Assembly (NCBI RefSeq): GCF_006345805.1
Contig: NC_043013.1
Coordinates: 42,842,001 to 42,906,000, forward strand
DNA from: Octopus sinensis
Lineage: Eukaryota
Length of the DNA: 64,000 bases
Reading direction: 5' to 3'
Shown here: positions 12,693 through 64,000 of the stretch, in pieces
Numbering within the stretch: position 1 is the stretch's first letter
Layout: each line of letters starts with the position of its first letter
Translations under genes and position numbers: made by a program
Notes under the pieces: model-generated
What the model was told of the DNA's origin: nothing
Seen by the model: only the letters and a program-made list of their open reading frames with translations
Databases searched by the model: none

Positions 12693-15530
12693 TATAACAT
12701 TTTACTAAACTTTTTTCTGATTTAAATGAATCCGTAAATTAGATCCAGCAAGTATACAAAATTTTGAAAATTTTCACTTAATTTCAATTAAAAAATTTCC
12801 AAATCTGTGACAGTAATTGAAAAGATACTAACCCCAGACCGACCAATGCCTTAAAACTGTGGAAGCCTTTCAGATATCTATATCAGTGTGTGTGTGTGTG
12901 TTTCTCAACCACTGCTAAACAATCATTTATCATTTGTTTGCACCTCTGTAACTTATTGGTTTAGCAAGAATCACGATATAACAAGTCCTAGAATTTTAAA
13001 AAATAAGTACTAGGGGTTGATTTGTTTGACTGGGCTGGCCAACCTGAGGTCTGCTTCATACTTTCTTGAAATGGGTTTATTTAAACAAACATTTTTTTTA
13101 ATTTATCAAAAATTAAAGATTGTAATGAAAAGTAAAAAAGAAAGATATTACTGTTTTTGCAACGATAATATTTCATGTTGAATCAACGATCATTCATTCA
13201 TTATTGTAATAATAGCATGAGAAAGCAAAATGCTTTCAATTCAGTATACAAGTGGTCCTCAAAAAATTTCTGATTAAAGTGGCCCACTATGCAATTTGAG
13301 TTGGCCAGGACTGGACTAAACCCTTCAAGGTTGAAACAAGCAAAAAACACAAGTTAAAAGTAGCACTTTTTGAAAATAGCTATTTTTAAACACAGTGTAG
13401 TATGTATACATGAAGCATTTGAAGAGAAATACACATGGAAATAAATAATACATCTGCTTCAAGAGTAAAGAACATATCCAAACTTGTTTACAGTTAGAGC
13501 ACGCCATTTCTTTGTATAGCTAATGCAGGACTTCAATCCATAATGGACTCCTCTAAGTCAGTAGCATCATTAAAGTCAGCTACAAACAATTGCATTCACC
13601 TCTAGTTATGAAATTACTATACTCATCTTGTACTCAGAGTATGCTCTGGCAACCTGTCACCAACAGCTTTATCTTCCTTCCAGCTACTCTCACCTACCCT
13701 TGCAATAATGTGAGGTAGCCATTTATCTCATCTGTAGCAAGACAACTATGCTTGTCCCTCTATCACACCTTTGCCTTCAACACCTGACATAAAGCCAATT
13801 CCCTTCTCTCAAGTACACTCCTATTCAGTGGAGATCTTTTTTCCTTCCTTTACTTCATCTTTGCAAGTTATTTAGTGACATCAGAAGAGCCAGTTTCAGG
13901 AAAAAGGCACCAGTACACTCCATGAACTGGTTGGCATTAGGAAGGGCATCCAGCCACCCAAACCATGCCAAAAAACAACATTGGGGCCAGACATTATTGC
14001 AGCTCGTCAGATCCTTTCAAACCATCCAACCCATGATGCGTGTCTGAACTGATTTGTTCCCTCCAGACTGGACTGTATCTGTTGAATGTTGGCAGCATTA
14101 ATATCCTGCACAATGTGATTTTTGGTAGTTAGGAGAGCACATTCAAAGAGTCGGGCTTAATTTCTATAATTTCGCAAGGAGCTAGGATAAATATTTAATA
14201 GTATTTATTGTAGTATTGATGATTGTATTACAAACTTTTTGTTTGTATTTTCACAATTACGTTCTCAAGTTCATTAGTGGCTGATCATTGTTCCTTACTG
14301 AAGGAAAAGTTTTGCAAATTGGGATACTGACACACAGTTGTTACAAGCAGCACTCAGACATGTAGGAAGATTAAAGTTTTTACTCTTATCTTTAAATATA
14401 AGTTTCTCTGAGACATCCTCTCCACCTGTCAGCTGATGTACTACCTGAGATGATTGTCAGAATTCACCTGAAATCACTAGAGAACAACTTTACTTATGAT
14501 GTGAGTGTTAACTCTGGGAACTTATAAGGTATGATTGAAAGCCTCATGCAAGTCTGAGACATTATGAACTCCTATATTTTCAGTTGGACCTCCTTCTTCA
14601 AATCCTCTGCCAATAATTGCACACAAAAATGTCATTGTGTGCAAGGTTCTGTGGCAGCACATAGCAAAAAAGCCAGGTCGTGATACCTATGAGCAAGGCT
14701 ACAGCAATTCTGGACGAGGCCATCACAGAAGGAATTTGTTTGAATGAATGAACTTTTTGTGAAAATTAAGTTGATAAAAAGTCATCAAAATCAGACTGAT
14801 ACAAAAATAAACATTTTGACTGTTCCACCTGAAACTTCAAGGAAAACAAACAGGGACATGTTAAGATAGAAAGAGAGAGAGAAAGAGGAAAGTTGAGTAA
14901 TATAGAGCAAAACCAGAGAACATAAAGAAAAAATATAGAATAAAGGAAAGTCATGAGGAATACATAGTGAATAAATATAACACTTTGCGAGTGGTTTACA
15001 GTGAATAAAATTTATTTCTCCATATATTACATTCTATGTGGTCTCACTTCTTTATTACATTCTGTGATTGCTCTTCCCCTCTTTAGTAAATACAGCCAAT
15101 CTGGGCTCCACCCCCTCCTCTTTTATTAAAATATATCAACTGTGGGAACTGTATGTGTGTCAATAATAACTAATAAAATATAGCAACAAATATGAAGGAA
15201 ATAAATATATTAAGACAGTAATGTTAGAGGGAGTAGAGTGAAGATAGGGAGACGGCAGTATGTATGTGTGTGTGTGTGGCTGTGCGCGTGAAAGTATAGA
15301 AGGAGAAAAATATGATTGAATGTCCAAGAACCAAACACTAAGTGACAAATGGAATGCAGGATGTGGAAGATATACAGTTGTAGGGCAGGATTTTATTATC
15401 TATCAGATTCCATCTGCCACTCCAAAATCAAATACCTCAACATGACTCTCATACCTTAATCCTCAGTTCGGGTTTCACATAGACCCCATAATGTTGTAAA
15501 CGTCAAAGCTAAGCTCTTGCATACATCCAC

Positions 15531-18500
15531 TCATATACCACCACCACTACCACCCTCGTGTGTAACCATCATGATCCCACTACGTGACTGAGAATTGCCA
15601 AACATGTTACTAGGTCCCAAGTTCTGCCCCACCCCACCACTGTTACCAGGTCTACTATTGTCAACAAATGCCCCACTGGCATCACGCCCCGTTTTGTCCA
15701 TGGGGTTACCAAACCATTGTTCATTCGGTTGGTCCATGTCTCCATGCATGTGAGACCAGTTGTCCATTTTCCTATCTACACTGCCAGAACCCCAAGGAGG
15801 TCTCTGGTCAGGTCCACCACCTAGAAGGAATAAGACAGAGAAAACATTAGTTAATGACACACAAATATGAAAAATAAAGAGTTAAAAGAATTGTATAAGA
15901 GAAGGAATAAAAAAGGAGAATGTTGATTAATATCAAGATTGATGGATACACGGAAGAATAGGGTTTAACCCTTTAGCATTCAGATTATTCAGTCAAAAGT
16001 AATGTTTCTTTATTTATAATGACATTGTAGAGTAGGTGTGAGAACCTAGATCTGGATGAACATAAAACAGGTAGAATATTTGGGCCCAATGTAGCCAATT
16101 TCAATGCTTAAGTGTTAAAAGAAAAAAACAGAGAAGGACAGCTACCAAAAAGTGGAGGATGGGGGTGAGATTTTATTCAAGTGAGAGGGAAAGTGAAATG
16201 ATTAAAACAAGTGTAAGCTTACCAAAAGAATTTCTCACCCTTCCCAATCTATCATGAGCTGATATATTTCGTCGGTCGTGATCACGTCCTCGATCAGGAC
16301 CAACATATCTCCTATCAGGATCCCCACTTGGTCCCATATCTCTTCTTAACTCAAAAGGCATCCTATAAAGAGAGATAAATGAGATACAAAATTAGAAAAT
16401 TATTTCCTAATTGCTTAGAACCGTTGTAAAGGGACAATGTATAGAAGCTGGGCAAATAATAGATATTCACCTTTAAGATGGAACCAACTCAGAGTATATA
16501 GTGGACAACAATGTCGTGATACTGGACAAAATTTAGGCACAGGTGTAGCTGTGTGGTTAAGGACCTCACTCTGCAACCATGTGGTTTCTGGTTCAGTTTT
16601 ACTGTGTGGAAACTTGGCCAAGTGAATTCAATAGACAAACTATGTGGAAGCCCATCACAAACACACATACATACGTGCGCATCTGTGTTTATGTTTGTTC
16701 CCTCCTACTGCTTGACAGTACTTATTTATTTGTTTATGTCCCTATAACTTAGCAGTTCCGCAAAAGACATAGACAGAACACGTGCCAGAGACAATTTATA
16801 TAGCTGAAACCTTCAAGCTGCAGTTTATTGACTGAACTGAAACATGTGAGAAAAAAAACAGCAGCAGGTGTGGGGAAGGAGTAAAAAGATATATAAGAAT
16901 GCATACACTACATTCAGAAGCCAGCGATTGAGAAAGGCAAAAGAAACTTTAATTCAGAAATCAATGACAAAATACTGTCTCTACCACTGGCAACTTACCG
17001 CGATTCATTCTGGAAAGGAAGTTCAAATCTAGAGGGGTTACCAGAACTACTCATCCTGGACCGTTTACGTTCATCCCAGAGGTCATCATCACGTAGGCTA
17101 CTTCGATCATGGGGTCTTTTTGAAGGATGTCTCATATCATCAAACCTGATATTAAAAAAGAAAAAAGAAAAATAACAGTAAAATCAAGTAATTTGCAGCT
17201 GTACTGAATGACATGCAGCTGAAAGATATGATAAAATAGTAAACAACCTTAACTTTCAACAATTAACAACCAGGACACCAGTTGAGCTAACACACCATGC
17301 AGTCATTAAACATACTAGAAACGGCAATCAAAACATCCTCAAATCATCCCCAGCTGTCTTGGAAGAAAAACAAAATGTTGGATGTACTGGATAATGTAGT
17401 CCAACATTATACCCAGAAGAAAACAAAGATCAGAAAGGAAAAAGAAAAAAAGTAGAATGATCATAGCTGGAACACCCTTAATTATAGGTCTGCTCCTTCT
17501 GGGCTGACTTAGGGCTAAACAAACCCATCACCAGTGATTTAATATCCATGTAACAAAAACAAAGCAGTAAACAGCCCCACCAAAAAATTACAGATTACAT
17601 ACCAAAGTAGATAATGGGATTAATTCCTTGCTACTAAGTAGCTAAATACCATCACAGTAAATAATTTCATGTCAATATATAACAATGCTTTGTAGAACTA
17701 CTATTGCCATTTATTGTGACAATGATGTAAAGAATTCCTTCCAGCCATAACCAGTGGAATGTGATGATTTAGTTGTTATTGCTAGCAGATCAAGTGACAA
17801 TACCAAATACATGTTACCTCAAAGTGTTCTATTGTTGTTTTTTATCAGTGTGCCTGTGCCATGCATGAAATATCCATGCTGGTGCCACATAAAAAGGACT
17901 CAGCACATTCTGTCAAGTGGTTGATGTTAGGAAGGACATGCAGCCATAGAAACCATGCCAAAACAGACAACTGGAGCCCAGTGTAGCTATCCAGCTGGCC
18001 AGTTCCTGTCAAACTATCCAATCCATGCCACCGCGGGAAATTGACGTTAAGTGATGATGATGAGTGGTTGTATTTTGGATGTTGGATAATTCAGCTAGGG
18101 GTGGTGTTAGCACCACTGATGCATTGTCTTGCTTCCTCCATTATGAGATCAACACATCAACATTACCATATCTTTCCATGCATATCTTATCATTTTACAC
18201 ATATGAATCTCATTTGAGGTTATTTTCCACTATTACAAAAAATCCTACCTCCTAATTGCCAATCTAACAAACAAAACAAACATGAAATTATCCAAGGGAA
18301 ATAAAATATAATTCAGTAAAAAAAAACACCAAAATAACAGCAATAAGTTTGTCATAAGTATTTAGAAACTTTGGGGGAATGTGAAATAATTCATTTTCAT
18401 ATGTAGAGCTTGAAGAACATGAAGCTACAAATAATAACATGTAAATATTGGCTTAAAAACGCTTACATATAGAAAAAGTCAAAGGCTGCCGGTGGAACAA

Positions 18501-21500
18501 TGGTAGAATGTCTGTTAGATTTACAGAAGATGTAGGTACATGCTCGAGGACAGTCTTTTGGATTTTTCTATCCAAAAGGGGTTCCTAACCCAATATTTAC
18601 ATGCTGTTATTCATGGCTTTATCTACTTTTAAGTTCTACAGATAAAAATGAATCATTAAGTTTACAGCATAGCCTGTCTCACTTACCGCAACATGTCAGC
18701 AGACTGCATCTCTACGTCGCGCCTTTCCATTTCAAAAAGTTCTTTTTCCATCCTGTATCTTAATAATTTCTCTTTCTCCAGCTTCATTCTCTCTAACCTG
18801 AAAAATGTGAAAGAACATAAAGATAGTGTTAAGAATACAAACAGAAAAAAAAAAAGACAATTTCTGCCGACACACACCAACCTGTATGTACCCTAATACA
18901 TGTTCCTCTGCAAGAATACCCAAGACACATTCTTTTGAATCTAGAGGGAATCATATGTTTTTGTCGAAATGTCACTTTACAAACCTCAAATATTAGGAAT
19001 GTCAGATGACATTGATGAATCTACATAAACTATAAAGGTAAGCAGAATAAAGAAAAGCCTCTTGATATAGAATACAAACATATTTCATTCCTTGGAAAAG
19101 AGAAGCAAGTGGACGAAATAATAGAACATCAGTCTGCTAAACAACTGACCAACATCGCTGTGGGATGGACAAAGACATTTAAGTCTTAAGTTAACATTCA
19201 CATAACACCAAATAGGAACCATGCAGAGGTATCATATAACACCTTATCATTTCAAAACACAAACTACAAAGATAATATAGCCGTATAGATAGCCATAAAA
19301 AGTAGAATGGTCACAGTCTCTGATCATAGGTCTGCATCAAAACTAATCAACAACACATTTTACTAAAAGAATCAAGAAACTATGTCTGACAATCATTTCT
19401 TTAATGTTCATTGCTGCTAAGTTCAATTCGTCCTTGAGTTTTGAAAAGGTATTGAGAAAAAGGGCTCAAAATAGGTCATCTTCTCTTTATCTTGAAACGA
19501 AGTTAAAAATTTACAATGATGTCTAGCCAAACCTCTGAATTATCAGATATTAAAAATAAAAATATGAAGAAACTGCTAAAACAATTCAACCAAAGAATAT
19601 AAACAGTAAAAATTTATCACTGAATACATCTTACAAATTCTGATATTCAATTTTCTTCTCATATACACTGAATATTTTCCTTCTTTTACCATTTAAAAAA
19701 AATATCTTTGCCCTACTTTGTGAAAATTTCCAAATTTCTCACACCATTTAAAAGATCTTTAAAATGTTTTTTATAGCTCAAAAAGGAAGCGCAGCACACA
19801 ATGTGTTTATGCAGGGTGTCCACAACTGATTAGAAGAAGGGAAGAAGCTATCCTTAGATTAGGGACCTAACTTGAAAGCTTGAAAATGAGCATACTCTGC
19901 CAAAGGAACCCAAAGACTAGATGTGATCTTAAACTAGACAACATAATTCTACCACCAAAAACAGGGATGCCCCCTGCCCTCAGACAGCTTTTAACATAGT
20001 GTTCATCTATCAAAGCATTGGTCAACCTAAGACTATGTCAGAAAACACCTGTCCAATATGATGCACAATGACACTGAATTTGATATGATGTAGACGTGAA
20101 GTAAACTTCTTACCCACACAGTTAAGCTGTCCTGTCTTAAGCAGTTTAAATGTGAATGCACTTTTAACAAACCTAATCTTCTCTCTAACTTTGTTCAATC
20201 TTATGACCTCCTCCTCCAGTTTCTGTAACAGTATCAACATAATCTGTCTCACTTACCGCAACATCTCAGCAGAACGCATTTCTACATTACGTCTTTCTAT
20301 TTCAAGAAGTTCTTTTTCCATTCTGTATCTTAATAGCTTCTCTTTTTCCAGTTTCATTTTTTCCAATTTCATTTTCTCTAACCTGAAAAGAGTGAAAGAC
20401 TATAAAGATAACGTTTTAAAAGAATTTTAAACAGAAAAAAAAAGTGAGAACCCCTGCCTAATCACACCAACTTGTACACACATGTTACTCTGCAATAATA
20501 CCAGAGTGACATTCCTTCGAACCTAAGAGAAATTATGTATTTGTCGAAATGTCACTTTACGAAACTTAAATGTTAGGAATGTCAGATGATATTGAGAAAT
20601 CTACACAAGAACTATAAAGGTAATCCTGTTGATATAGAATATAAACACATTTCATCCCAGGGGAGAGAGAAGTGAGCAGGGTGGACAAAATAACAGAATA
20701 ACAATCTGCTAAACAATGGACCAACATCACTATGGAATGGATAAAGACACTTAACCCTTTGGCACAAAGATTTCCCTATCAAATGTAATGCATAAGCATT
20801 GTTTGTGAAATGATCTTGGATTATCTCAGAGATTTGACACTTCAACAACGTGATTGTATATTTTTAGATTAACATTAAATGTTAGGATTGTTAGATGATG
20901 TTGAGGAATCTACACACAAACTATAAAGACAGGCAGAATAAAAGCCTCTTCACATATAATATAAACACAATTTGGACAAAGATACTAAAGTCTTACATAA
21001 ACATTCACCCACAACTTAATAAGTACCATGTGAAGGTATCATATAACATCCTATCATTTTAAAACACAAAATACATAGACAATATAGTACTATAGATACC
21101 CAAATATAAAAAAAAAGGAACAGATAAACTTATAATGTCCTTGATCATAGACCTGTAAGATAAATAAACAATAAAACAAAGAAAAGTTCACAAGAATTGA
21201 GGAAATGTTTGTCTGACAATCATTTCCTTAACTTTCATTGCTGCTAAGTTCAATTCTTCTTTGGGTTTTGAAAGGGTATCGAGGAAAACTACTCTAAATA
21301 TATCGTCCTCTCTTTATCCTGAAACAAGAGTCAAAAATTTACAATGGTGTCCAACCAATCCACTGATTATAAAATCTTAACCCTTTTGAAACACATGATG
21401 TTTTGGTATGTGTAGACAAAAGGACCCAACATTTTTTTTTATATTGAGATACATCTACTGGAAGACAATCTCTGATTAGCTATTACATTTCAAAACCAAC

Positions 21501-23907
21501 CATTCACAACGTTTCTTCCATCAGACTGATGGACTGGCCTCAAACTCCTTACAGCTTGTATCATTCAGGTTGATCAATCAGCCTGGGTGTCCCAAGAGGG
21601 TAAAAATGATATCAGGAGATTGCTAAAACAATCTGAAGAAAGAATATAGATAGTAAATATATCATCCAATACATCTTACATATCCTAATCTTTACTTTCC
21701 TTCCCATATATACTGAATATCTTCTTTCATTATTCATTTAAAATAACTTACTCTCAACTTTTGTAACAACTTCCTAATTCCTCATAAGTCACAACTACTA
21801 TCTACAAAAACATCTAAAACAACAGTACTTAAGTCTTTAAGGCATAGCAGTATTTAAAGTGCTTTCTCAGAGTCTCCAAGACCAATTTGAAGAAGGGCAG
21901 AAGTTATCCTTAGATTAGAGACCAGGCCTGAAAGTTTGAAAAAGTGTGTAATGTGGTAAAGGCACCCAAGGACCAGATGTAGTCTTAAACAAGACAACAA
22001 AATAATTCTACCACCAAAAATAGGATTGGGCCTTGAGACAGCTTTTAACATTTGGTATCATGGCGGTGTGAAGTAAACTTCTTTCTCACAAAATCACAAC
22101 ATTCTGTCTAAAACAGTTTAAATGTGAATGCACTTTTCACAAACCTTATCTGCTCTCTGACTTTGCCCAATCTTTTCACCTCCTCCTTCTGTTCTCGTTC
22201 TACATTCTGTTGAAGCATCCGAGCCATATCAAGTTTTTTCAACCGACGCCTCTCCTGTTCCCTACGATTCCTTTGTCTCTGACGTAAACGCTGTCGCTCT
22301 CTTTCCTTCTGTCAAGAAATTTGGTGGGGTTTTGTTTTTATTTTCAAGAATGGAATATGAAAAGAGAATAATTATTACAAAGCAAAGAATAAAACAAACA
22401 TAAAATAAACAAAGAAACCCACACAAAACTAAATAACCGTACCAAATAAGACTACTGATATAATACATAGATGGACATAACAAATTGCAAATCTAAATAC
22501 CACAATAATTTAATACAGACACATCATAGATTTTTGCTATTCTGAATAAAACACAAAAACATCATAATACTCCTGTACCCAGATATAGAAACAAATCTTT
22601 TGTTTTACATAATTTTTCCATGCTACACTAGGAGATACATTTCTCTCTTCTAGCTAACCATTCAACCTTGAAGTAAAAGTGGAATAAATTTTATCAGTTA
22701 AGCAAAGTTGAGTAAGTAGAATTATATAATTTACTACAGTAAATAGGACAAAACATAACAGCTGCAGAAAGATTTGAAATTCTAATCATGTTCCCAGTAG
22801 CCCAGCGCTTCTATTCTAATGAAATAATTGACCTACTTCCACCTAAACTGATTGGAAATTTCTTTACATATTCTATACTGCAACAGCCACCACAATTACT
22901 ATCACAACTATTGTGACTATTGCAGAGTCACATCTGAATCTATCTGCATAATTTAAACAATTTCTTTAGGTTACATCTCAGGCGTGCTACACACTAAGAC
23001 CTTCACTGGAAGACAATGCATTTCAAAGCTAACACACCAGTTTTAAGGCAGGGGAGCTCTATCTCAAGATTTCAAGATGATATCAGGGATGATAAACCCT
23101 TTAAATTTAGGGTCAAATAAGTGGTATCAGCCACTCTAGTTTCAAGGCAAAATTATTTATCTAATTCTACTTCAACTACACACTTTAGCCACATTAAAAA
23201 CACATACATAAAATTGTACTTACTTTTATTTGATCAAATGATAAAATATCTTTCTTGGAAGCAGGGTCACCAGGCCCTCGTGGTTTAGGCTTTGTTGTAC
23301 TGAGAGCTTTCTCCTTGGCTCCTGCTGCTGCCGCAGGCTCTGCACTTTTCTCAGAGCCTTCTTTTGCAGCTGGTTCAGCTGTACTCTTACTTGGTGTAGT
23401 TGCATGAGATTTATCTGAAACAGTGAATCATTTATCACCATCATTTAATGTCCATATTCTTCCTGTAGCCAATTCTCACCTATTTTCAAGCAAGGTGATA
23501 TTTCCCATGACAACACAAATTTTTCACAGATGACTTAAAACCAACAAATTAATCTGTCCAATGGCAATGCTTCTTTACAACCATCTTATGACACCAAGAC
23601 AATGGTATAACATACATAATAGGCTTATTTCAATTTCCATCTACCAAATCCACTCACAAGGCTTAGGGCATCTCAGGGCTAAAGCAGAAGACACTAGCCC
23701 AAGGTACCACACATAACTACAAAACCACACTGGCACTGAAGATCCACCAGTAAATGTATTTCTATAAATCTTGCCAGTCGAACCCAGCACAAATCAGGAA
23801 ATTATTCCAGTACCATATTCTCTTCAGAACAAGCTACTCTTGTACAAAGACAAAACACACACACACGTGACCTTTAGTAAGACTGACCCAAGCTTTTGCA
23901 CAAGGAC

Positions 23908-23948
<41 letters not shown>

Positions 23949-48187: not shown

Positions 48188-48218
<31 letters not shown>

Positions 48219-48474
48219 CATGACTGTGTGTAAAAATATGGAAGGACAGAAATATGACTGAATGTCCAAGAACCAAGCACCAGGTGGCAATTGGAATGAA
48301 AGACGTGGGTGATGTATGGCTGTAGGGCAGAGTTTTATTGTCTGTCTGAAATTCCATCTGCCACTCCAAAATCAAACACGTCAACATGACTTTCACACCT
48401 CAATCCTCAATTTGGATTTCATATAGACCCAATAATATTATAAATATCAAAACTAGGTTCTTCCATATGTCTAT

Positions 48475-50079
48475 TCATATACCACCACCACCCCTATGTG
48501 AAACCATGAGCCCACTATGCACCTGTGAGTTACCAAACATGTTGCCACGTCCAAAGTACTGCCCCATCCCCCCACTGTTACCACTTCGACTACTGTTAAC
48601 AAATGCTCCGGTGGCATCACGTCCTGTTTTGTTCATGGGGTTATTAAGCCACGGTCCATTGGGTTGGTTCATGCCACTGTTGCCAATGTCTCCATGCATG
48701 TGGGACCAGTTGTCCATTTTTCTATCTACACTGCCGGAATCCCAAGGAGATCTCTGGTCAGGTCCATCACCTAAAAGGAAAAGAACAGAAAAGGTAGCAT
48801 TTAAAGATATACAAATATGAAAAATGAAAAGTTCAATGAATTAACTATAGAACAGAATAAACAGGAGAATGTAGATGAATGAATGCAAAGACAGAGAGAT
48901 ATGGAGGAAAATAGGGCTTTACCCTTTAGCATTCAGATTACTCAGTCAAATGTTTCTTTATTCACATTCTTTTGAATTAATCATGCATTATCTTGTAGCT
49001 TTGAGATTGCAATGAAGTGATTCTATATTTTGAGAATGACATTGTAGAGTTGGTATGAGAAGACAGATATGGTTGAATATAAAACATAATATAGCCAGCT
49101 TAAATGAGAAAACGTTAAAAGAGAAAAATAGAGGGACAGCTACAAAATGGTGGAGGATGGAGGTGAAGCTTTATTTGAGAGAGAAGGAGAGAAAAATGAT
49201 TAAAACAAGCAGAAACTTACCTAAAGAATTTCTGCCCAGTCTATTGTGAGTTGATGTGTTTTGTTGGTCATTATCACATCCTCGGTCGGGACCAATATAT
49301 CTTCTATCAGGTTCTCCACTAGGTCCCGTATCTCTTCTTAACTCAAAGGGCACCCTGGAAATGAATCCATGTATACAAGCTGAGCAATCAATCAACATTC
49401 ACCTATATACTTAGAGCCTTGTGCTTACATCAACACTGACCCATACAGAGACTGGCATACATGCCAACACCAATCCACAATACACCAAAACTGAGCTGTA
49501 TAGAAACTAGTGTATACACCGAGTCTGATTGATATGACGATTGATGTTTATAATAATACATACTAGCAAATGTGATGATCTGTATAAAGGCATAAGATCA
49601 AAACCAAAAATTAAGATCTAAAAAAACAAATTACCAATTGAATTTTTCATCATTTCGAGAATGGTTATCAATTTGTCCTTCACCTCTGACTCGTGTATTG
49701 TGAAAAGGACCCATCTCCATTCTCATCATTTCTCTTTCTTTATGTTCATCACAGCGACTTCCACCTTCCCTTCTATTGTACCGTTCACTTCCATAATCTG
49801 TATTCTCATATTCATTATACCTGAGAACGAAAATGAGAGATGAAATGAGATGTATTTTATATATACATATATATATATATATATACATACATATACATAC
49901 ATATACATACATACATATATATCATCATCATCATCATCATTTAGCGTCCGTTTTCCATGCTAGCATGGGTTGGACGGTTTAACTGGGGTCTGTGAAGCCG
50001 GAAAGCTTCATCAGGCCCAGTCAGATTTGGCAGTGTTTCTACAGCTGGATGCCCTTCCTAACGCCAACTGGCGTATATA

Positions 50080-50174
<95 letters not shown>

Positions 50175-53100: not shown

Positions 53101-56100
53101 GAGTTTCTACAGCTGGATGCCCTTCCTAACGCCAACCACTCCGAGAGTGTAGTGGATGCTTTTACATGCCACCAGCACGGGGGCCAGTCAGGTGTTACTG
53201 GCAACGACTGCGCTTGAATTTGTTACACATGCCAACGGCACAGGTGGCAGTAAGGCGATGCTGATAACAATCCCGCTCGAATGGTGCCTCCTACAAGCTA
53301 CCGGCATGGAACCTAGTTAGCCGCTCTGGCAATGATCACGCTCGGATGGTGCTCTTAGCACCCTACTAGCATGGGGCACATGTGCCAGTAAGGCAAAGCT
53401 GGCAACAATCACACTCGAATGGTGCCTTTTATGTGCCACTGGCACGGAAGCTGGTGAGCTGCTCTGTCAACGATCACGCTTGTATGGTGCTCGTGCCCAA
53501 TCTAACAAACAAAACAAACATGAAATTATTCAGGGGGAATAAAATACAATTCAGTCAAATAAGTTGTATCAAAGACACCAAAAAAAAAGCAATGAGTTTA
53601 TGTCATAAGCATTTAGAAACGTTGAGAGAGTGTGAAATAATTTGTTCTCATCTGTACAGCCCACTGTAGATAAAGCTATAAATAATAACAAGTAAATATT
53701 GGCTTAAAAACATTTTTGGATAGAAAAAGGCAAAGTGTGCCTGAGGGACAATGGTAGAATGTCTGTCAAATTTACAGAAGATGTAAGGTCTTGCCCAAGG
53801 GTAGCCTTTTGGCCTTTTCTAACTAAAAGGGTTCTTAACCCAATATTTACATGATACTATTTATGGCTTTAGCTACTTAAAGTTTTACAGTGAAAAATTA
53901 ACCATTAAGTTCACAGTATGACAGTATAACGACATAATCTGTCTAACTCACCGTAACATCTCAGCAGAACGCATCTCTTCTTCATGCCTTTCCATTTCCA
54001 AAAGTTCTTTTTCCAGCCTGTATCTTAATAATTTCTCTTTCTCAAGTTTCATTCTCTCTAACCTGAAAAGTGTGAAAGAATTCAAAGATATCATCAAAAA
54101 TTTAAACAGAAAATAAAAATGAAAATGACAATCCCTGCCTACACTCACCAACTTGTAGATACCCTGACACATGTTACTCTACAAGAATACGCAAGAGACA
54201 TTCTTTTGAATATAGGAGATATTACATATTTGTCCACATGTCATTTTACAAAACTTAAATATTAGGAATGTCAGATGATGCTTATACATTTATATAGAAA
54301 CTATAAAGGTATGCAGAATAAAGAAAAGCCTCTTGATATAGAATATAAACACATTTCATCCCTTGGGAAAAGGAAGTGAGTCAGGGACACAGTAATAGAG
54401 TATCAGACTCCTAAACAATGGACCAACATCACTGTGAGGTGGACAAAGATAAGTACCATGAAGAGGCATCATGTAACAACCTGTCATTTAGAAAAGAAAA
54501 CAAAAACACATAGATACTATAAGTACTATAGAAAGCCAAAAAATGGAATTGTTACACCTGGTAGGTCTTTGATCATAGTTTTGCATAACTAAATACAAAG
54601 AACAGTTCACAACAAGAATTGGGGAACTGTTTGTCCAACAATCGTTTCTTAACCTTTCATTGCTAGGTTCAATTCTTTCATGGGTTTTGAAAGAGCACTG
54701 AGAAAAGCTGCTCCAAATATACCATCCTCCTTTTACCTCACAACAGAGTCTAAAATTTACAATGGTGTCCAACAAACTCACTGGATTATCAAATTTTAAA
54801 AATAATATCAGGAGACTGCTAAAACAATTTAAACGGAGAATCATCATCATCGTTTAACGTCTGCTTTCCATGCTAACATGGGTTGGACGGGTTGATTGAG
54901 GACTGGCAAGCCAGAAGGCTGCACCAGGGTCCAATCTGATCTGGCAAGGTTTCTACAGCTGGATGCCCTTCCTAACGCCAACTGCTCCAAGAGTGTAGCA
55001 GGTGCTTTTTATATGCCAGTCCAGTGGGACTGGCATTGACCATACTTGAATGATGCTTTTTATGTTCCCCCGGCACAGGTGCTAGTCAGGTGGTACTGGC
55101 ATCGGCTACGACAATGATTTCACTTGACTCAACAGGTCTCTCAAGCATAGTTTATTGCCTAATGATTGAAGGGTACTCTTCAAAGGGCTGGTTATGTGAC
55201 ACCAGCATAGGCCATGGTTATGGTCTCATTTGGCTTGCCGGGTCTTCTCAAGCTTAGCTTATCTCCAAAGGTCTCGATCACTTGTCATTGACTCCACGAG
55301 GTCCAACAATCGAAGGTCATGCTTCACCACTTCACCCCAGGTCTTCCTGGGTCTACCTCTTCCACAGGTTTCCTCCACTGTTAGCGTGTGACACTTTTTT
55401 ACACAGCTGTCCTCGTCTATATGCAACACATGACCATACCAGCGCAGTTGTCTCTCTTGCACACTCTATCTGATGCTTCTTATGTCTATGAACTTTGCCC
55501 AGGCTATTCTTATTCTAGCAGCTATGCTTTCAGAGCATCCACCCCCGCTACTGACTTGGTCACTTAGGTAATGGAAGCTATCAACTACTTTCAGTTTTTT
55601 CCCCACTGTGCATCTGCTACACACAAAAACTATCTTCCCAGTTAGCCTTCCTTTGAGATTGCTGCACCTCTTATGTGTCCATAGCTTACACCAGGTACAT
55701 CTTATGAAGTTTCTACCTACGCCTTTTCTACAGATTGAGCAGGGCCATCTACTTGAAGGGATTTGTGATTTGTCTGCCTTCCTATTTATTAAGACTTTGG
55801 TTTTTGCTAGATTGACTCTAAGGCATTGGTCAACCTAAGTCTATGATAGAAAACACCTGTCCAAAATGATTCACAATGACACTGAATTTGATATTATTGA
55901 GGTGTTAAGGAAACTTCTTACCCACACAATCATGCAGTTTTGTCTTAAGCAGTTTAAACGTGAATGCACTTTTAACAAACCTTATCTTCTCTCTAACACT
56001 GTCCAATCTTATGGCCTCCTCCTTCAGTTTCTGTAACAGTAACAACATAATCTGTCTCACTTACCGCAACATCTCAGCAGAATGCATCTCTACATCACGC

Positions 56101-58280
56101 CTTTCCATTTCAAGAAGTTCTTTTTCCATTCTGGATCTTAATAGTTTCTCTTTTTCTAGTTTCATTTTCTCTAGTTTCATTCTCTCTGATCTGAAAAGTG
56201 TGAAGGAATATAAAAATAACATTAAGAATTTAAACGGAAAAAAACAAAAAAAATTTTTTTAACGAAAATCCCTACCTACACACACCAACTTCTATGTACC
56301 CTGACACATGTTATTCTACAAGAATACCCAAGAGATATTCTTTTAAGTCTAGGTGAAATTACGTATTCATCCAAATGTCATTAAATGAAGCTTAAATATT
56401 AGGGATGTCCGATGACAGTGAGGAATCAACACAGAAACTATAAAGGTAAGTAGAATAAAGAATAGCTTCATAATCCAGAATATTTAAGGGATAAAGATAA
56501 AATACAAATACATTTTATCACTTGTAAATGTGTAGTGTATCAGAAGGACAAAATGACCAGAATACTAACATCATTGTGAGCTGGACAAAGACACATAAAT
56601 CTTCAGTTAACATTCACATAACACTTAAATAAGTACCATCAGGTGATATTATATAACACTAGCACTATGACCCGGCGTTGCCAGGTCATAGTGCTAGTGC
56701 ATGCATATACAGCTGCGTGTGTGCGCACATACACACTAGTACTGTCCAAATCTCTGACCAATCCTATACAGTTAGCTGGCATTCAATAGGTGTATCAAGT
56801 TTCGGGCATTTTGATTGGATTTTGGATAGAAAATTCACAAAAAAGTCACTTCTATTGATTTTTTTAATGGTTTTGCAGGGTGACTGGGGAAATGTAAAGA
56901 TGTGCACGACCACCCTTGGATGGTTTTGAATGACTGTAGAAAGTGCGAGCCCTCTAACTAAAAGATTGATTTGTATAAAGGACACACACATAGACAGACA
57001 TTTTGCCGTTTATATATATAGAGATACTATCATTTAGAAAAAATACATAGATAATATAGTCCGATAGATAGCCTTGAAAAGAAGAATGGTTACAGCCTTT
57101 GATCATAGGACAGCATGATAACTAAAGAATAACACAAAGAACAGTTCATCACAACAATCAAGTAACTGTTTGTCTGACAATCATTTCTTTAATTTTCACT
57201 GCTAAGTTCAATTCTTCCTTGGGTTTTGAAAGGATATTGAGGAAAATTACTCCAAATATGTCAGCCTCTCTTTGTCCCAAAACAGAATTAAAAAATTACA
57301 ATGGTGTCCAACAAACCTACAGAGTTATCAGATCTTAAAACTAAAAATACCAAAAGATTGCTAAAACAATTTAAACAAAATATATAAATAATAAATATAT
57401 CACTGAATTCATCTTACATGTTCTGATCTTTAATTTTCTTCTCATATATACTGATTATCTTTCTTCTTTTCCCATTCATTTAAAATAACCAGTGATCAAA
57501 TTCCATATTCCAGATATGCCACAAATACAGTCTAAGAGATCTTTGAAATATCTTTAGAGTTTCATCAGAAGAGAAAGAGCAGTATTTAAAGTGCTTTCTT
57601 GGTGTGTCCAAGGCTATTAGAAGGAGGGAAGAACTTGTCTTTAGATCAGAGACCCATCTTGGAAGTGTGAAAGAGTGTGTACTCAGCTAAAGGCCTCCAA
57701 GAACCAGATGTGGAGTTAAACCAGGTGACAGAAGTATTCTGTCACAAAAACTTGAATAGTCTTTCAGACAAGGTTTAATGTTTCTATCTACAAAAAAATT
57801 TCACTGACAAAGCATTGGTCAACCTGAGCTTATGATACAAGACACTTGCCTGATGTGCTGCACATTGAACCTGAAACAATGTTATTGTTAAATAAATTTA
57901 ACCATACAGTGATGGAATCCAACATTAAAAATTGCAATTTTAGTGGAATTTCAAATAACCTTAACTGCTTCCGCACCATGTCCAATCTTATGGCCTCCGT
58001 CTTCTGTTTTTTTCCCACATTTTTCTGAAGCTTTAAAGCTAACCGATGTTTTTGTGGCCGACCTTTCTCCTGTGCTTTAAGGTCAGGTTTTCTCCGACGT
58101 GTATTCTCTATTCTTCTTTCCTTCAACAAATTTGGTGGAAATTTTATTTTTATTTTCAAAAATGGGAAAAGGAAATGAGAATGATTTTCAAGTAGCAAAG
58201 AATAAAACAACAATATAAAATGCTTAACTCTGCCCCCCCCCCATAAAATGAACCGATTCTACAGAACAAATGCATGTGTG

Positions 58281-58336
<56 letters not shown>

Positions 58337-61300
58337 ATGTGTGTGTGTGTGTGTGTGTATCATCATCATCATCATTTAACGTCCGCTTTCCATGCTAGCA
58401 TGGGTTGAATGATTTGACTGAGGACTGGCAAACTAGATGGCTGGTTTACTAACACACACTGCCCACAGCTGATTTACTAACACACACTGATTTACTAACA
58501 CTCTGCCCACAGCTGAATCTATTAAAAGGAGAAGAGGAACTGACAAAGCTGATCACATATTCTTAATTCAATAGCTGACCATTTGGTTTATAAACAAAAC
58601 AATAAATTGAGGATGTCTCACCCTTTCAACTGTTAATCTCATACCATTCACTTGAGATTTATTCAACCACATTATACATTGCAAAGCTTCAGCCTCAGTA
58701 GACATAGTAACAAAAGCATGACATCGACCGCTACGTTTGTATAACTTTGTAACCTTTTGGCAATCCTCAACCTAATAAAAAATAAAGAATTAAAATTTCA
58801 TACATGAAAAATTCAGTCTGTATTCAGCTCCAGTGTCAGTAGCAGCAGTATCATCCTCACTAACAACATATCAATTCTAAATTATTAGAATGACATTGCA
58901 GATTTAAGTAAAACTCACTTCAGGAAGCAAGGTAAGAGAATAGGGAGATTACCATATTTCATAGCATAAAAGACACATGGACATATTGAATCTGCCTATT
59001 TCAGCAGTAATACCCGCAAGAGAAAGTTTTTAGTGCATTGAAGTAATACAAGCCCAATATTGTATATAGGACTAGAGGTGACTATTTGAGATATTTCTCT
59101 GAAATGCATTTCATATACCATCAAATGCAGTAATTTTTGGTCTAATAATCTGGTCTGGGGGAAAGGGTGGTGCCCATGGCCTTCACAGGTTCTGAAACAA
59201 ATGAAATCTACAAGAGTAATATTTCTTCTGAACAATTTCAACTGACAGCTGTAAGGAAAGAACTGCAGTAAGCCAACATTCTGAGAAAATAAAAGGACTC
59301 GGAATAGAGATTAGTGTGTAGTATGGGGTTAGGTTTAGAAACAAGAACATACAAGTCAGTAAGGGCTGTTCAATTGGAGGTGATACAAGACAAGCCAGCA
59401 CCAAAGAACAAGTTTTGCTGAAGTAACTAACTGTTGTAAAAGCAGAGAAAAGAGTCAGCATATCTTTGGATTAAAGACTGAAGAGTATTGTCAACAGAAT
59501 CAGACAATTTTATTGGGAATGCTTGCAGATTAGAGCAGGAATCAGGGAAGGTAGGGCTGTACTGTAACACAAAGAAAACAGAACTGCAAGTATTCAATCA
59601 CGAAATGCCTGTGTCAGTGAAAATGAGAGACGGTAAGTTGTTCAAGGTAGTTGAAAGTTTCAAATACCTTGGTGTGTGGACATGAAGTACTGAAAAAACA
59701 TCATAGCAAGGAAAGCTCTTGCCTGGAGTGCATGCCATAAATTGAGAAAGGTATGGAGTTTAAAGTTAGCAAAGAAATTGAAAGTGAGGTTCGTTTCTGG
59801 CAACAGTGGAGTCTGTTCTTTTATTCAGGACTGAAACATGGATGCTCACTAAAGCACTGAAGAAACAGTTGGTCGGTTGTTATACGAGGATGCTTAGAAT
59901 GGCAATGTCTCCTGGAAGAGTCATACAACAAACACTGACTTATACCAGGGACTAGCAAAAGTAACACTGAAGATACTGCTATGCTGAAAATATGTGTTCA
60001 CAAGAAGAGAACTTTCTTGACGGTGAAGCTATGCTTTTGCAGAAACTTTAGAAGTTCAGCTGTATGCTCTTCATGCCTAGAGGATGTAAGTGATTTTGTT
60101 TACTTGGTATGTGCAGTGATTATGCCTTTATACTGGAGGAGGAGGAGGAGTCAAGATTGATATAATCCTATTGAAGAATGTTTTCAATGACTCAGTTCAA
60201 GTCAGTACAGGTTTTGTACAATCATACAGACGATGCTTGGGGACAAGCAGTGAGATAGGATCCAATAATACAGACACCTGCGCAGGAATGAGCTCTGTTG
60301 AAGACAATGGAAAGTAAATCACTGATGTATAAAAAGACAAAACTAAACCCTTGGTACACCAATGTTGACAGAATGTGAGTCTAAGAAAGCTCTATATACA
60401 TGGTGACATGTATGAACCCATACATGAATAGAATAGTTGAGAGACTTACAAGTCAAGTACAGTTGAAGGCTTGATTGATGTCAAAGTATAACAATGTTGT
60501 TTCCACCAAATGTTTTCATTAAAAGCAAAATTCCATTGGTGAGAAACATATGAACAGGTCTACAGTTAATATGTCCATTAAAAAGCCTTACTGGTAGCTA
60601 TTAAGGAGCGAGAGACATTTAAACGGCTGGAACAGATGGTTGTTAGGACTTTCTTCATCACATCTGAAATGTTAGAAGTGAGTATAGTTCAACAATTATT
60701 GGTGTTTGTAGCACAATTCCAAAGACTGCAATATATCACAGTGTGCTTGCAACAGAGCAAACTCCATAGAAAGCATAATGATTTTAGGAGTGTACAGTAT
60801 GATGTATTTATTGAATGGAAAGAAAAAGCCAAACACTTTACATGGTCACTCTTTAAATGTGGGAAGACATGACAAATACGAGAATGGTGCGATAATTTGA
60901 TAAATGGAAAATGAAAGAAGCCTCTATGTGTGTGCGTGTGAGCGCATGTTTCTATCTTGACATCATCATCATCATCGTCGTTTATCGTCCGTTTTCCATG
61001 CTAGCATGGGTTGATTGTTGTAAATGAATGCAAAAACATGCCTGGCCATCAGGGAAATATTACCTTGCTTGGAAACAAGGGTTGATGACAGGAAATGCAA
61101 CTGGTTGTAGAAAATCTTCAATAAATTCTATTCAATCCATGAAAACATGGAAAAGTGGATGTTAAAACAATTCTGAAAATCACGACAATCATTATTAATA
61201 AATAACATTTATTGAAAGACATAAAACACATTTCATTCAACATACCTTGCCATACTTGCTAAAAATTGAGATGAGGACTTTATCAGGGATATTTGCAGGA

Positions 61301-61529
61301 AAGCCACAGACCCACAGATTCCGATTGATTTGGTCATTGCCTATTGATATAGGAATGTATCAATAAATACAAAAAGATGATGAGGAAATGCAACCCAGTA
61401 AGGTCAGAATTTCAAATAATTCAAAGAAAAGCAACAAGCTTAGAAAGTAAGCAAAGAGAATGTGAGAAAACATGCAAAAGAAAAAAGAAATTACCTTTTT
61501 TGGCAGCTTTGGGCTCAGAAACCAAAGAA
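48475..61529 (-). CDS. SAFB: SAFB/SLTM-like gene, copy B (3' part, about 479 aa; 5' exons lie beyond the window end)
   Basis: Exons 5'->3': 61495-61529, 61246-61340, 58622-58771, 57960-58120, 56065-56190, 53952-54062, 51691-51837, 49635-49820, 49221-49354, 48475-48770. All are GT-AG, phase-compatible and stop-free. Nine are homologous to copy A exons, and intron homology continues to the window end. Confidence 0.88.
50091..50175. repeat. (AT)n microsatellite; similar (AT)n/(CA)n tracts at about 380-486, 23905-23946, 58279-58358 and 61710-61806
   Basis: Directly visible. Confidence 0.95.
54840..55490 (-). mobile_element. RTE-type LINE 3' fragment with RT C-terminus
   Basis: QERQLRWYGHVLH...CGRGRPRKTWGEVVKHDLR, followed by the 3' UTR and (GAT)n tail. 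Further tails at about 39.7, 46.8, 49.9, 53.0, 58.4, 61.0, 61.8 kb and (plus strand) 62.4-62.7 kb. Confidence 0.9.
56659..57024 (-). mobile_element. Non-autonomous Helitron, copy-B-specific
   Basis: A|TC start, gacctggcaacgccgggtc hairpin and CTAG|T end. The flanks join to match the uninterrupted copy A intron near 21040-21055. Confidence 0.8.
58622..61340 (-). CDS. SAFB: Copy B divergent RRM exons (61246-61340 and 58622-58771)
   Basis: NRNLWVCGFPANIPDKVLISIFSKYGK / VEDCQKVTKLYKRSGRCHAFVTMSTEAEALQCIMWLNKSQVNGMRLTVER. Exon lengths (95 and 150 nt) and splice sites are the same as in A. Confidence 0.9.
59490..59990 (+). mobile_element. Decayed LINE RT C-terminal fragment (RTE-like)
   Basis: KVGLYCNTKKTE...VESFKYLG and TVESVLL...ETWMLTKALKKQLVGCYTRMLRMA. 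Confidence 0.8.
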
Positions 61530-61727
61530 CTGTAACAATAAAATAATTATTTAGAAACAGCATCATCATCATCAATAGAGAATTTTAAAGGACTTTAATG
61601 GATTATAATTTCAACATTGATGCAAGTGAAAACTGGCAAACCTACACCATACAACTTTACATTAATGTGCTTGATCTAAATAAACACAATGTATATCTGT
61701 GTGAGTGCATGTGTGTGTGTGTGTATG

Positions 61728-61797
<70 letters not shown>

Positions 61798-62843
61798 ATA
61801 TATATATCATCATCATCATCATCATCATCATTTAGCGTCCGTTTTCCATGCTAGCATGGGTTGGACGGTTCAACTGGGGTCTGGGGAGCCCGAAGGCTGC
61901 ACCAGGCCAGTCAGATCTGGCAGTGTTTCTACAGCTGGATGCCCTTCCTAACGCCAACCACTCCGAGAGTGTAGTGGGTGATTTTATGTGCCACCGACAC
62001 AGGTGCCAGACGAGGCTGGCGAACGGCCACGCTCGGATGGTGTTTTTATGTGCCACCCAGGGATGTACTGCCTGGGTAGGCAAGGTAGGCAGTACCTACC
62101 CTAAATAAAATAGATCGATAGTAATATTTTCCTTTTCGGCAAAATATGCACCTAATTCAATAAAATTATGAAGGTTACTCTGATTACTATGCAAAAAATA
62201 CAAAATATTTTATTTTTTTGTAGATTAGGTAGGCATAATTTGCCCCTGCCTTTCAATCTCAGTATTAAAGCTACGCATAGAACTGCTGTAGTACACATGC
62301 TGCGTACATTCCTACAACAATGTTTTCTTTACGTGCTATAAGACATGTTGGGGCAAGCGAAATCGAAATCGAATTGAACCAGCCAGGATCCCTGGTCTGG
62401 TGGTACGTAAAAAGCACCATCCGACTCGTAGCCGATGCCAGCACCGCCTCGTCTGGCTTCCGTGCCGGTGGCACATAAAATACACCAATCCGACCGTGGC
62501 CGTTGCCAGCCTCGCCTGGCACCTGTGCAGGTGGCACGTAAAAAGCACCCACTACACTCACGGAGTGGTTGGCGTTAGGAAGGGCATCCAGCTGTAGAAA
62601 CACTGCCAGATAAGACTGGAGCCTGGTGCAGCCTTCTGGCTTCCCAGATCCCCGGTCGAACCGTCCAACCCATGCTAGCATGGAGAACGGACGTTAAACG
62701 ACGATGATGATGATGATGAAAAGAGTAAGTAAATCTGCCCACAACTCCGTCGCATGCCTATGTTTCACATTATTTTTTTATGTGTTTAAATACATAAAGG
62801 CACCAACTGCCTACCCTGAATAATTACTGATGGCACATGCCTG

Positions 62844-62875
<32 letters not shown>

Positions 62876-64000
62876 ATACAGACACAAAAACCTATCTGCA
62901 TTTACATATCTATTAGTTAAAAGACAGCATCAAAGTACATTAGAATGATGTTGCCGTCTTCCTAGTTAGCAAAGCATACTGAATGCTCCACAACATAAGT
63001 TTCTTACCAATACTATCAAATTAATATTGCATGTAATGGAAATATGATGATGAAAGAAGCTTACCTGTTGTAAAGATGTGTTTATGTAGAAGTGATTTAT
63101 TATCACCTTTCAGGAATAAATGAATACAAAAGACACTAATTTCAAATGAAGATATTGGTTATGACGATAAATGGATTACCTAAACTAGCTAACTGTCACT
63201 GCACATCAGCAATGTATGACTAACACTTATGACGAAAGATGTACAGAAATACAGGAACTATAGTCTTCATGAAGCTAAAAAGAGGTCAGCAAGCAATGTG
63301 GAATTCCCTAAATGGTAACTGCTAATTTAGCAGGAACATGGCTGGAATACGAACACAATTAACTTAGTCTTCTGGTTTTCCAAACATCTTCCAATCTGTA
63401 TCTTGTCAGAAAAATTATTAATTATCTAACATCCACTGAGTCATGTCTATATTCTTGGGGACTCAGGATCCCCACCTCCTCTGCTTCAGGTGTTTGTTGT
63501 CATCTTCATCCAAAAAGACATTTTTGGTTCTTGACATGGGTTAATCTGTTCTTGTAGTTAATCTGTCACTAATTCGGTAATCACATCTAACATTGAGCAT
63601 GCGTAATAACACAGTCAAGCCCCAAACAATTTGCTGGCCTCTTTTTATTTCATGAACTATAGTTTATAATAACCAAGTAAAATATGATGAATATTTACTA
63701 ATATAAGTAGTGCAACATTAACTACCAACTATTCATATTGGGATCACCACATGCCCCCACCCAAAACACTACATTAATCTGTTAAGAGACTATAGCAAAT
63801 AAACATGGAGGAAACAGGCTTTAACGAGAAACTAACGGAAAGATATCTTGACATGTTTAGGTCAGTTATGGCCCAGGCTATGTTGTACTTACTTGTACCA
63901 CCACAGTACAATCATTATAGTATATTTTTATGCTTTCTGAAGACTAGAGAGATGTCTACCATATTGTTAGTAGTCTGGAATTCAACCCCACACTCAAACC

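Follow-up and report, generated by a model that had tools for sequence, protein, structure and literature searches.

What are two long, similar genes that lie one behind the other on an Octopus sinensis chromosome: a young tandem pair, relics in slow decay, or members of something larger? The question is raised by a window of 64,000 nucleotides (positions 42,842,001 to 42,906,000 of NC_043013.1, chromosome CM016875.1), in which an initial annotation had recognized a head-to-tail pair of SAFB/SLTM-family genes, referred to here as copies A and B. SAFB proteins connect RNA processing with chromatin and the nuclear scaffold, and most invertebrates examined carry a single SAFB copy. Positions are given in window coordinates (chromosome position = 42,842,000 + window coordinate), and cluster coordinates extend the same numbering beyond the window. 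We show that A and B are conserved members of a concertedly evolving cluster of six SAFB genes, truncated at both ends so that neither SAP domain nor C-terminal tail remains.

When window positions 1-38000 were compared with 38001-64000, a collinear chain of same-strand blastn blocks joined 13355-30957 (A) to 45099-64000 (B), with block identities of 69-86% (overall about 70-78%) and several blocks at an expectation value (E) of 0. The A and B regions alone yielded 31 blocks with 12,355 aligned bases, whereas ten block-wise shuffles of B compared with A yielded no blastn blocks, and a control with unrelated DNA of the window gave 610 aligned bases, all of them dispersed repeats. The homology spans exons, introns, the 3′ untranslated region and the downstream flank, as initially annotated, and because the genes lie on the minus strand, its ends at 13.35 and 45.1 kb are the 3′ flanks. 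It does not, however, end at 31 kb as had been proposed, since the 5′ half of A, up to about 44.5 kb, pairs with B at cluster 64-78.7 kb. The repeat unit is about 31-34 kb long, the gap between the A and B units only about 600 bp; A is complete in the window, B is represented by only its 3′ 19 kb or so (the 3′ two-thirds of the gene).

The pair belongs to a larger array. Overlapping loci were stitched without conflicts into 255.8 kb, and six SAFB-family genes (A to F, Table 1) lie within about 250 kb, three per strand, with C and D as the sole head-to-head pair, about 19 kb apart and with a DUF7041 gene between them. In the O. vulgaris annotation, this DUF7041 gene is joined to the D ortholog in a 1327-residue protein (P0138). 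The head-to-tail SAFB pair in the window is thus real, being carried by the collinear chain and by SAFB protein matches, but a two-copy tandem duplication does not describe the locus as a whole, A and B being two of the six genes. A third, conventional SAFB, which the initial annotation had expected nearby or elsewhere, is found in D (P0007), which lies on the other strand and about 69 kb beyond the end of the window; D is the copy foreseen because it carries a conventional Glu/Arg coiled coil. As for the suggestion that the cluster might be lineage-specific and undescribed, full-text literature searches for SAFB with octopus, cephalopod or mollusc found no paper describing it, but all six genes are already present in the RefSeq/ENA automatic annotation, and orthologous pairs exist in other Octopus species.

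That these genes are SAFB-family members is clear from their proteins. The draft A protein has matches at E = 0 among the RefSeq SAFB1, SAFB2 and SLTM proteins of three octopuses (O. sinensis, O. vulgaris, O. bimaculoides), vertebrate SAFB1/2 match it at about 1e-60, and homology to SAFB extends beyond the generic RRM, the six-copy alignment being collinear from exon 6 to the C-terminus. Candidate exons on the minus strand comprise two RRM halves, a long acidic exon, Lys/Ser/Arg-rich exons, Glu/Arg coiled-coil exons and a Gly-rich end. A six-frame comparison of open reading frames (ORFs) between A and B was unable to separate exons from introns, all frames being similar, and RefSeq proteins were used instead. 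Exons were set by exact protein-to-genome mapping, in which P0001, P0004 and P0136 were placed once non-canonical joins were allowed; P0001 (XP_036366415, RefSeq "SAFB2") fits the A exons at about 97-100% and P0009 (XP_036366413) the B exons at 98-100%; RefSeq lists copy B as "SLTM isoform X6", among other names. As P0003 never mapped exactly, the E coding sequence was pieced together from peptides with exact matches, and four codons were masked.

Copy A comprises 18 coding exons and 838 amino acids from an ATG in exon 4 to its stop (Table 1), and B, whose own exons run from exon 6 to the stop, about 737 amino acids in 13-14 exons when counted from an ATG in exon 5. Splice sites in both copies are AG/GT except at two joins of the NCBI model of A, namely the one between exons 4 and 5 and a gap of 93 nt within the acidic exon. 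RefSeq P0001 and P0004 skip these 93 nt through a non-canonical GA..CC gap, so that the repeat number differs between model and genome; the repeat in question, 48 bp in 3.2 copies, encodes 16-residue units. The same exon of A is 100% identical to that of C over 202 nt. Pfam detects an RRM without SAP in the A and B proteins (RRM_1 at 45.8 and 33.9 bits, respectively; cut-off 20.7), SAP plus RRM in D and F, and SAP in Argonauta P0158. The B RRM is predicted to fold as beta1-alpha1-beta2-beta3-alpha2-beta4, with a predicted local distance difference test score of about 85-89 in the core, and its top PDB matches are all RRMs. The three Lys/Ser/Arg-rich exons of A are missing from B, as from F, whereas an exon beginning "YNEYEN..." that is present in B-F is deleted in A. 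Exactly where B misses the Lys/Ser/Arg-rich exons lies a (TG)n tract.

The initial annotation had considered both coiled-coil regions derived, which agrees with what the exons show, the coil exons being both derived and internally duplicated. In the Glu/Arg-rich, putative coiled-coil region, A keeps a conventional Glu/Arg exon followed by two derived ones, whereas the first is degenerate in B and the two derived ones are conserved; tandem duplication of the derived exon is found in A, B and E. Candidate peptides unique to a copy are the A end "...HEGGSGGGI", "VEDCQKVTKLYKRSGRCHAF" in B and the B N-terminus "MDEKESETSD...".

What sets A and B apart is loss at both ends. The six-copy alignment shows the SAP-coding exon 1 intact in C, D, E and F and disabled in A and B. 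In A, exon 1 has CTG in place of its ATG and is thrown out of frame by a 1-bp insertion; exon 2 is absent, no match having been found when A was searched with exon 2 of C. In B, an 18-bp deletion removes the ATG of exon 1, an AAG codon has become TAG, exon 2 has a 1-bp deletion, exons 3 and 4 are lost, and exon 5 has a further 1-bp deletion, although exon 5 closes with "ATG GAT GAG", whose frame still matches that of exon 6. At the other end, the last exon of both copies has the same 4-bp deletion, which yields "...GG-I-stop" and removes the conserved C-terminal tail "RMQEPRFDAYNIMGSM", still recognizable downstream, out of frame; the Gly-rich C-terminal region is retained in shortened form. 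The claim that both copies keep open, spliceable reading frames therefore holds for A from exon 4 and for B from exon 5/6 to the end, and fails for the SAP-coding first exons, which are dead.

Comparison with O. bimaculoides places these losses in time. A locus of that species (L006) is collinear with B then A at 84-94% identity, and all six copies have O. bimaculoides orthologs; the cluster is older than the split of the two species. The ATG→CTG change of A is also found in O. bimaculoides A, the 1-bp insertion in O. sinensis only; for B, the deletion of the ATG is common to both species, the TAG is restricted to O. sinensis and a 23-bp deletion to O. bimaculoides. The lesions that cost A and B their SAP-coding 5′ exons thus differ between the two copies and are in part common to both species. 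Shared lesions combined with species-specific ones are the pattern expected of pseudo-exons that were dead before the species split and have decayed independently since, and because key lesions are shared between species, assembly error is ruled out for them. The truncated end has likewise been kept, the 4-bp deletion occurring in O. bimaculoides B too and O. bimaculoides A ending in "...GGSGGGI".

In the C-terminal protein tree, orthology groups are recovered for A (98%), B (100%), C (99%), E (93%) and F (100%), with an Octopus clade of A+B+C+E (77%) and a separate vertebrate SAFB clade (100%), in agreement with the initial annotation that the octopus duplication is independent of vertebrate SAFB1/SAFB2. 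Gene conversion, together with partial models, kept the N-terminal/RRM protein tree from resolving. In Argonauta there are at least two SAFB genes, the D-like P0012 and P0158 with a B/F-type RNP1 "RCHAFV"; this shared motif, rather than a resolved tree, suggests that the B/F-type RRM may be old. The cuttlefish Acanthosepion pharaonis has at least two copies on one contig (P0010, P0014). The P0010 model contains two RRMs in tandem and is probably a fusion of neighboring SAFB copies, a hint that SAFB has been duplicated in tandem in decapodiform cephalopods too. Among the matches listed, there was one copy from a non-cephalopod mollusc, Haliotis P0016.

The retained frames are maintained by selection, as follows from the absence of stops, omega below 1 and the absence of net frameshifts. 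Between A and B, omega was 0.10 (0.03-0.33) for the derived coil exon and 0.34 (0.21-0.51) for the C-terminal region. The 593 codons compared between B orthologs contained no premature stops and gave an omega of 0.49 (0.33-0.76), and AG/GT was kept at 11 of the 11 fully aligned B-ortholog exons. Introns of the B orthologs accumulated 7.9 indels per kb, 32% of them multiples of three; at this rate, about 9.5 frameshifts would be expected in 1785 exonic bases, while none was observed net of compensation (P of about 7e-5). For the RRM, most pairings of A, C, D and E with one another gave an omega of about 0.05-0.2, and comparisons of the B/F type with these copies gave 0.8-1.07. Lesions throughout the genes and neutral evolution, as of pseudogenes, were not found, this picture holding for exons 1-5 alone.

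Relationships among the copies are not those of a simple pair. By chained blastn, identity is 85.7% for A-E (24 kb aligned), 86.3% for C-E (22.5 kb), 82.1% for A-C (18.2 kb) and 86.6% for B-F (14.9 kb), compared with 75.3% for A-B (13.7 kb) and about 75% for the other pairs. A recent gene-conversion tract joins A and E (Table 1) and another, of about 9.6 kb at roughly 94%, joins B and F (cluster 70.6-61.0 kb), while divergence among the copies is more even across their 3′ halves. In the 3′ part of the big exon, the p-distance is 0.000 between B and F versus 0.037 between B and O. bimaculoides B, and in the exon 6 region it is 0.048 versus 0.093. As some tracts are thus closer between paralogs than between orthologs, gene conversion has acted after speciation; the array shows concerted evolution, with conversion ongoing between A and E and between B and F. 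B itself is a chimera: from exon 6 through the RRM and first coil exon it resembles F, but beyond a breakpoint near 57 kb, in the derived coil exons and all that follows, it resembles A, C and E. In neighbor-joining of the 3′ region, bootstraps were 99% for C+E, 100% for D+F, 100% for the two B orthologs and 46% for A+B, and the Kimura two-parameter distance was 0.25 for A-B, about 3.5 times the divergence of the B orthologs of O. sinensis and O. bimaculoides (0.072).

On balance, we consider it probable that A and B are independent, doubly truncated genes of the cluster with frames under purifying selection, although several points weigh against this. Constraint is no more than moderate (omega 0.3-0.5), the exons of the B orthologs have diverged in nucleotide sequence nearly as much as the introns (6.9% versus 7.4%), and the B RRM is nearly neutral, its omega being 0.91 between orthologs and close to 1 against canonical RRMs; its fold prediction used an alignment including canonical RRMs, which favors an RRM fold. 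In O. bimaculoides B, the big-exon acceptor falls in an assembly gap and the first coil exon has no match. The two joins of the NCBI model of A are non-canonical, with usable canonical sites at the exon 4/5 junction, and the 1-bp insertion in A (at about 43.74 kb) sits in an A-run and could be an assembly error. In O. bimaculoides A, exon 1 (L006 16825-16991) is still open behind its CTG, in an "ACC CTG G" context that makes a good Kozak sequence, so a non-AUG start is conceivable there, though exon 2 appears missing. The sisterhood of the A and B 3′ ends consists of one indel and a 46% bootstrap, and the protein tree sets B outside A+C+E. Start sites, start codons used and expression of A and B are what we infer from sequence. 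Finally, annotations in O. sinensis, O. vulgaris and possibly one O. bimaculoides model attach SAP exons from farther upstream to exons of B or A, which would restore SAP, a domain that could be supplied to A and B only by splicing from copy C.

Such models raise the possibility, which we regard as real albeit unlikely, that C-B-A is one long transcription unit that starts at the intact promoter and SAP exons of C and splices onto the B or A exon blocks as alternative gene-body/3′ cassettes, which would explain why the 5′ exons of A and B have decayed alongside conserved downstream exons. RefSeq fuses C and B into a single gene (XP_036366408-14) with isoforms named SAFB1, SLTM and SAFB2, in which canonical, in-frame junctions splice exons 1-5 of C to exon 6 of B (P0009) or exons 1-17 of C to the coil exon of B (P0136); exon phases are conserved among the copies, and cross-copy splicing therefore keeps the frame. 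The O. vulgaris annotation has one 101-kb gene over the whole C-B-A interval with isoforms that are C-type at the 5′ side and A-type at the 3′ side (P0002, P0141), and in O. bimaculoides a SAP-bearing gene model covers the whole B-A locus. However, these are automatic models in a region with paralog stretches of 90-100% identity, where short-read assembly and protein-guided prediction often make chimeras; the O. vulgaris junctions fall where A and C are most alike, and RefSeq also models A as a separate gene beginning at its own exon 4 (P0001). Paralog-induced chimeric assembly is an equally ordinary explanation of the SAP-linked models, and a compound locus in which the SAP-coding 5′ exons of C, the sole intact ones of the three copies, are shared and alternatively spliced onto the C, B or A bodies would remain a doubtful, tentative proposal.

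That A and B are unprocessed pseudogenes in slow decay, with frames left open by chance or by conversion from functional copies, is very unlikely. The disabling lesions in exons 1-5 of both copies, the C-terminal truncation, the omega of about 0.9-1.0 for the B RRM and the similar exon and intron divergence would fit such decay, and recent conversion tracts could refresh parts of the frames; yet both frames run without stops in either species, coding indels are all net multiples of three, omega is significantly below 1 outside recent conversion (coil exon, C-terminal region and B orthologs), and the truncated C-terminus has itself been kept in two species. Fully decaying pseudogenes were rejected on these grounds (open frames, no net frameshifts, omega below 1). 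Highly improbable, too, is a simple recent duplication with A and B as closest relatives: they are neighbors, head-to-tail and with little DNA between their units, they share the last-exon deletion, and neighbor-joining on the 3′ region pairs them, but their identity is at the between-subfamily level when A-E, A-C and B-F stand at 82-87%, their 3′ distance far exceeds that of the B orthologs, and the cluster map with its six copies contradicts it, for which it was rejected. An assembly artifact, whether uncollapsed haplotypes or a mis-join, is of negligible probability. The assembly is a long-read one of a repeat-rich region, and the insertion in A lies in a homopolymer; against this, the copies differ by about 25%, each has its own O. 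bimaculoides ortholog, the order B then A recurs in the independent O. bimaculoides assembly and the C-B-A interval in O. vulgaris is similar in length to that in O. sinensis. The haplotig artifact was rejected accordingly, as the initial annotation had anticipated from the level of divergence.

If A and B are, as we favor, independent genes, they would encode proteins with RRM, coiled coil and Gly-rich region but without the SAP DNA-binding module. These proteins, which would probably work alongside the SAP-bearing paralogs, would presumably still bind RNA and, via the strongly conserved coiled-coil exons, may oligomerize with the SAP-bearing paralogs C-F, which could modulate or diversify SAFB ribonucleoprotein complexes. 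B would add an altered RNA-binding surface, given its replacement of Tyr-Gly by His-Ala in RNP1.

Table 1. Features of the octopus SAFB locus, in window coordinates unless marked as cluster coordinates.
Feature	Position	Strand	Basis or remark
Copy A	13.3-44.5 kb (cluster)	-	head-to-tail with B, C
Copy B	45.1-78.7 kb (cluster)	-	head-to-tail with A, C
Copy C	81.6-114 kb (cluster)	-	head-to-tail with A, B
DUF7041 gene	119.8-127.1 kb (cluster; L004 1-4156, L002 1-4196)		between divergent C and D
Copy D (P0007)	132.9-167.1 kb (cluster)	+	conventional Glu/Arg coiled coil
Copy E	171.8-206.3 kb (cluster)	+	head-to-tail with D, F
Copy F	210.6-245.8 kb (cluster)	+	head-to-tail with D, E
A repeat unit, whole gene with 5′ and 3′ flanks homologous to B	13355..44508	-	chained blastn, A 44508→13355 = B 78661→45099
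A pseudo-exon 1 (SAP domain)	43675..43810	-	six-copy alignment; ATG→CTG and 1-bp frameshifting insertion
A exon 4	40365..40421	-	exact mapping of P0001, exon alignments; first usable ATG at 40400
A exons 5-7, acidic N-terminal region	39199-39168, 38648-38412, 38090-38057 (span 38057..39199)	-	
A large acidic Ser/Glu-rich exon	31191..31788	-	exact mapping; 48-bp x3.2 repeat at 31575-31726
A exon 9 and RRM first half	29573-29533, 29386-29292 (span 29292..29573)	-	mapping, Pfam; RNP2 "NLWVSGL"
A RRM second half	26364..26513	-	mapping, Pfam; RNP1 "RCYGFVTM"
A three Lys/Ser/Arg-rich exons	24932-24845, 24101-23970, 23414-23224 (span 23224..24932)	-	no counterpart in B
A coiled-coil exons	22308-22145 (conventional Glu/Arg); 20382-20257, 18797-18687 (two tandem derived copies) (span 18687..22308)	-	
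A C-terminal exons	17145-16999, 16362-16223, 15820-15531 (span 15531..17145)	-	stop 15533-15531, from 4-bp deletion just upstream
A/E recent gene-conversion tract	22050..32885	-	94.8% identity over 10.9 kb; p-distance 0.022, 3354 ungapped columns
B repeat unit, in-window part (3′ flank to intron downstream of big acidic exon)	45099..64000	-	continues to about 78.7 kb beyond the window
B exon 9 and RRM first half	61529-61495, 61340-61246 (span 61246..61529)	-	exact mapping of P0009; "NLWVCGF"
B RRM second half	58622..58771	-	mapping, six-copy alignment, Pfam; divergent RNP1 "RCHAFVTM"
B degenerate first coiled-coil exon, F-like	57960..58120	-	mapping of P0009
B two derived coiled-coil exons	56190-56065, 54062-53952 (span 53952..56190)	-	
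B C-terminal exons	51837-51691, 49820-49635, 49354-49221, 48770-48475 (span 48475..51837)	-	stop 48477-48475, from same 4-bp deletion as A
SINE-like repeat copies	1239-1414, 1601-1930, 13889-13955, 17916-18063, 46784-46951, 49927-50068		
SINE-like repeat copies	52989-53219, 54840-55111, 58362-58443, 60962-61013, 61818-62057, 62416-62711		
Pif1-helicase 2B-domain ORF	34626-35155	+	A long intron 7; Pfam E = 2.6e-14
PHD/C1-like zinc finger ORF	55469-55834	-	B intron between the two derived coil exons
16-bp x15 minisatellite	41069-41307		between A pseudo-exon 1 and exon 3
(TG)n tract	58275-58358		position of Lys/Ser/Arg-rich exons missing from B
(TA)n tracts	50074-50175, 61724-61807		
45-bp x5 repeat	4751-4978		downstream gene region
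ORFs like a retroelement integrase end	8405-8927		by eye
Gene downstream of A	1 to about 8309	-	524-residue product; extends past window

The window also contains dispersed repeats and transposon-like ORFs (Table 1). At least 14 copies, on both strands, were seen of a dispersed repeat of about 170-300 bp that resembles a short interspersed nuclear element (SINE) and contains a 62-bp tandem unit; this repeat is far commoner in B introns than in A introns; it had no tRNA or Rfam match, and Rfam and tRNA scans of the window as a whole found nothing. The Pif1 2B-domain ORF in A is antisense to the gene and is probably a fragment of a Helitron or Pif1-like transposon, and the PHD/C1-like ORF of B, which has no A counterpart, is probably transposon-derived. 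The next gene downstream of A gave no Pfam match; as a 524-residue gene also follows the cluster in O. vulgaris, this flank is conserved. The integrase-like ORFs nearby likewise had no Pfam match.

SAFB proteins comprise SAP, RRM, coiled-coil, RE, RG and Gly-rich regions (PMC9958909). Vertebrate SAFB1, SAFB2 and SLTM share with the octopus copies the RRM (highly conserved in A, C, D and E), a conserved block upstream of it, a Glu/Arg-rich putative coiled-coil region and a Gly-rich C-terminal part, and both groups arose by lineage-specific duplication with linked copies. Unlike vertebrate SAFBs, A and B are without SAP and the C-terminal tail, B and F have a strongly diverged RRM and are without the Lys/Ser/Arg-rich exons, and the octopus coil exon has been remodeled and tandemly duplicated. 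Arrangement differs as well: human SAFB1 and SAFB2 stand head-to-head and diverge from a shared bidirectional promoter about 500 bp long (PMC4582101), whereas the octopus copies are head-to-tail on each strand, the product of an independent and larger expansion. PHM-2 is described as the sole SAFB ortholog of Caenorhabditis elegans (PMC12767362), a single copy of the same family representing the ancestral invertebrate state, in contrast to six clustered copies in octopus.

The O. bimaculoides genome paper reportedly describes tandem expansions of protocadherins and C2H2 zinc fingers, and these arrays are said to be, likewise, lineage-specific tandem paralogs on one chromosome with signs of concerted evolution; compared with them, the SAFB cluster is a far smaller family of long multi-exon units of about 33 kb. 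SAFB was not among the octopus expansions highlighted in the literature found by full-text searches. Clustered protocadherins and UGT1A offer a likeness only if C-B-A were one transcription unit, with one promoter region, alternative homologous exon blocks and conserved phases. Those loci have variable exons at the 5′ side and constant exons at the 3′ side, an order that C-B-A would reverse, with a shared 5′ end and alternative whole gene bodies, an arrangement suggested by gene models.

At present, annotations at the locus are inconsistent, with merged copies, chimeric-looking isoforms and SAFB1/SAFB2/SLTM names that carry no orthology meaning, and expression atlases using these gene models therefore mix up paralogs. 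Were the compound locus real, it would yield SAFB isoforms that share one DNA-binding head but differ in their RRM, coiled-coil and C-terminal modules, and the decay of the first exons of A and B would be its footprint, a shared 5′ end with alternative gene bodies derived from tandem duplication. The six-copy octopus array would be a natural experiment in separating the SAP, RRM and oligomerization modules of the SAFB family. Mammalian SAFB proteins suppress the processing of intronic transposon RNA (PMC10901741), and it may be speculated that the octopus array has a bearing on RNA regulation in transposon-rich cephalopod genomes.

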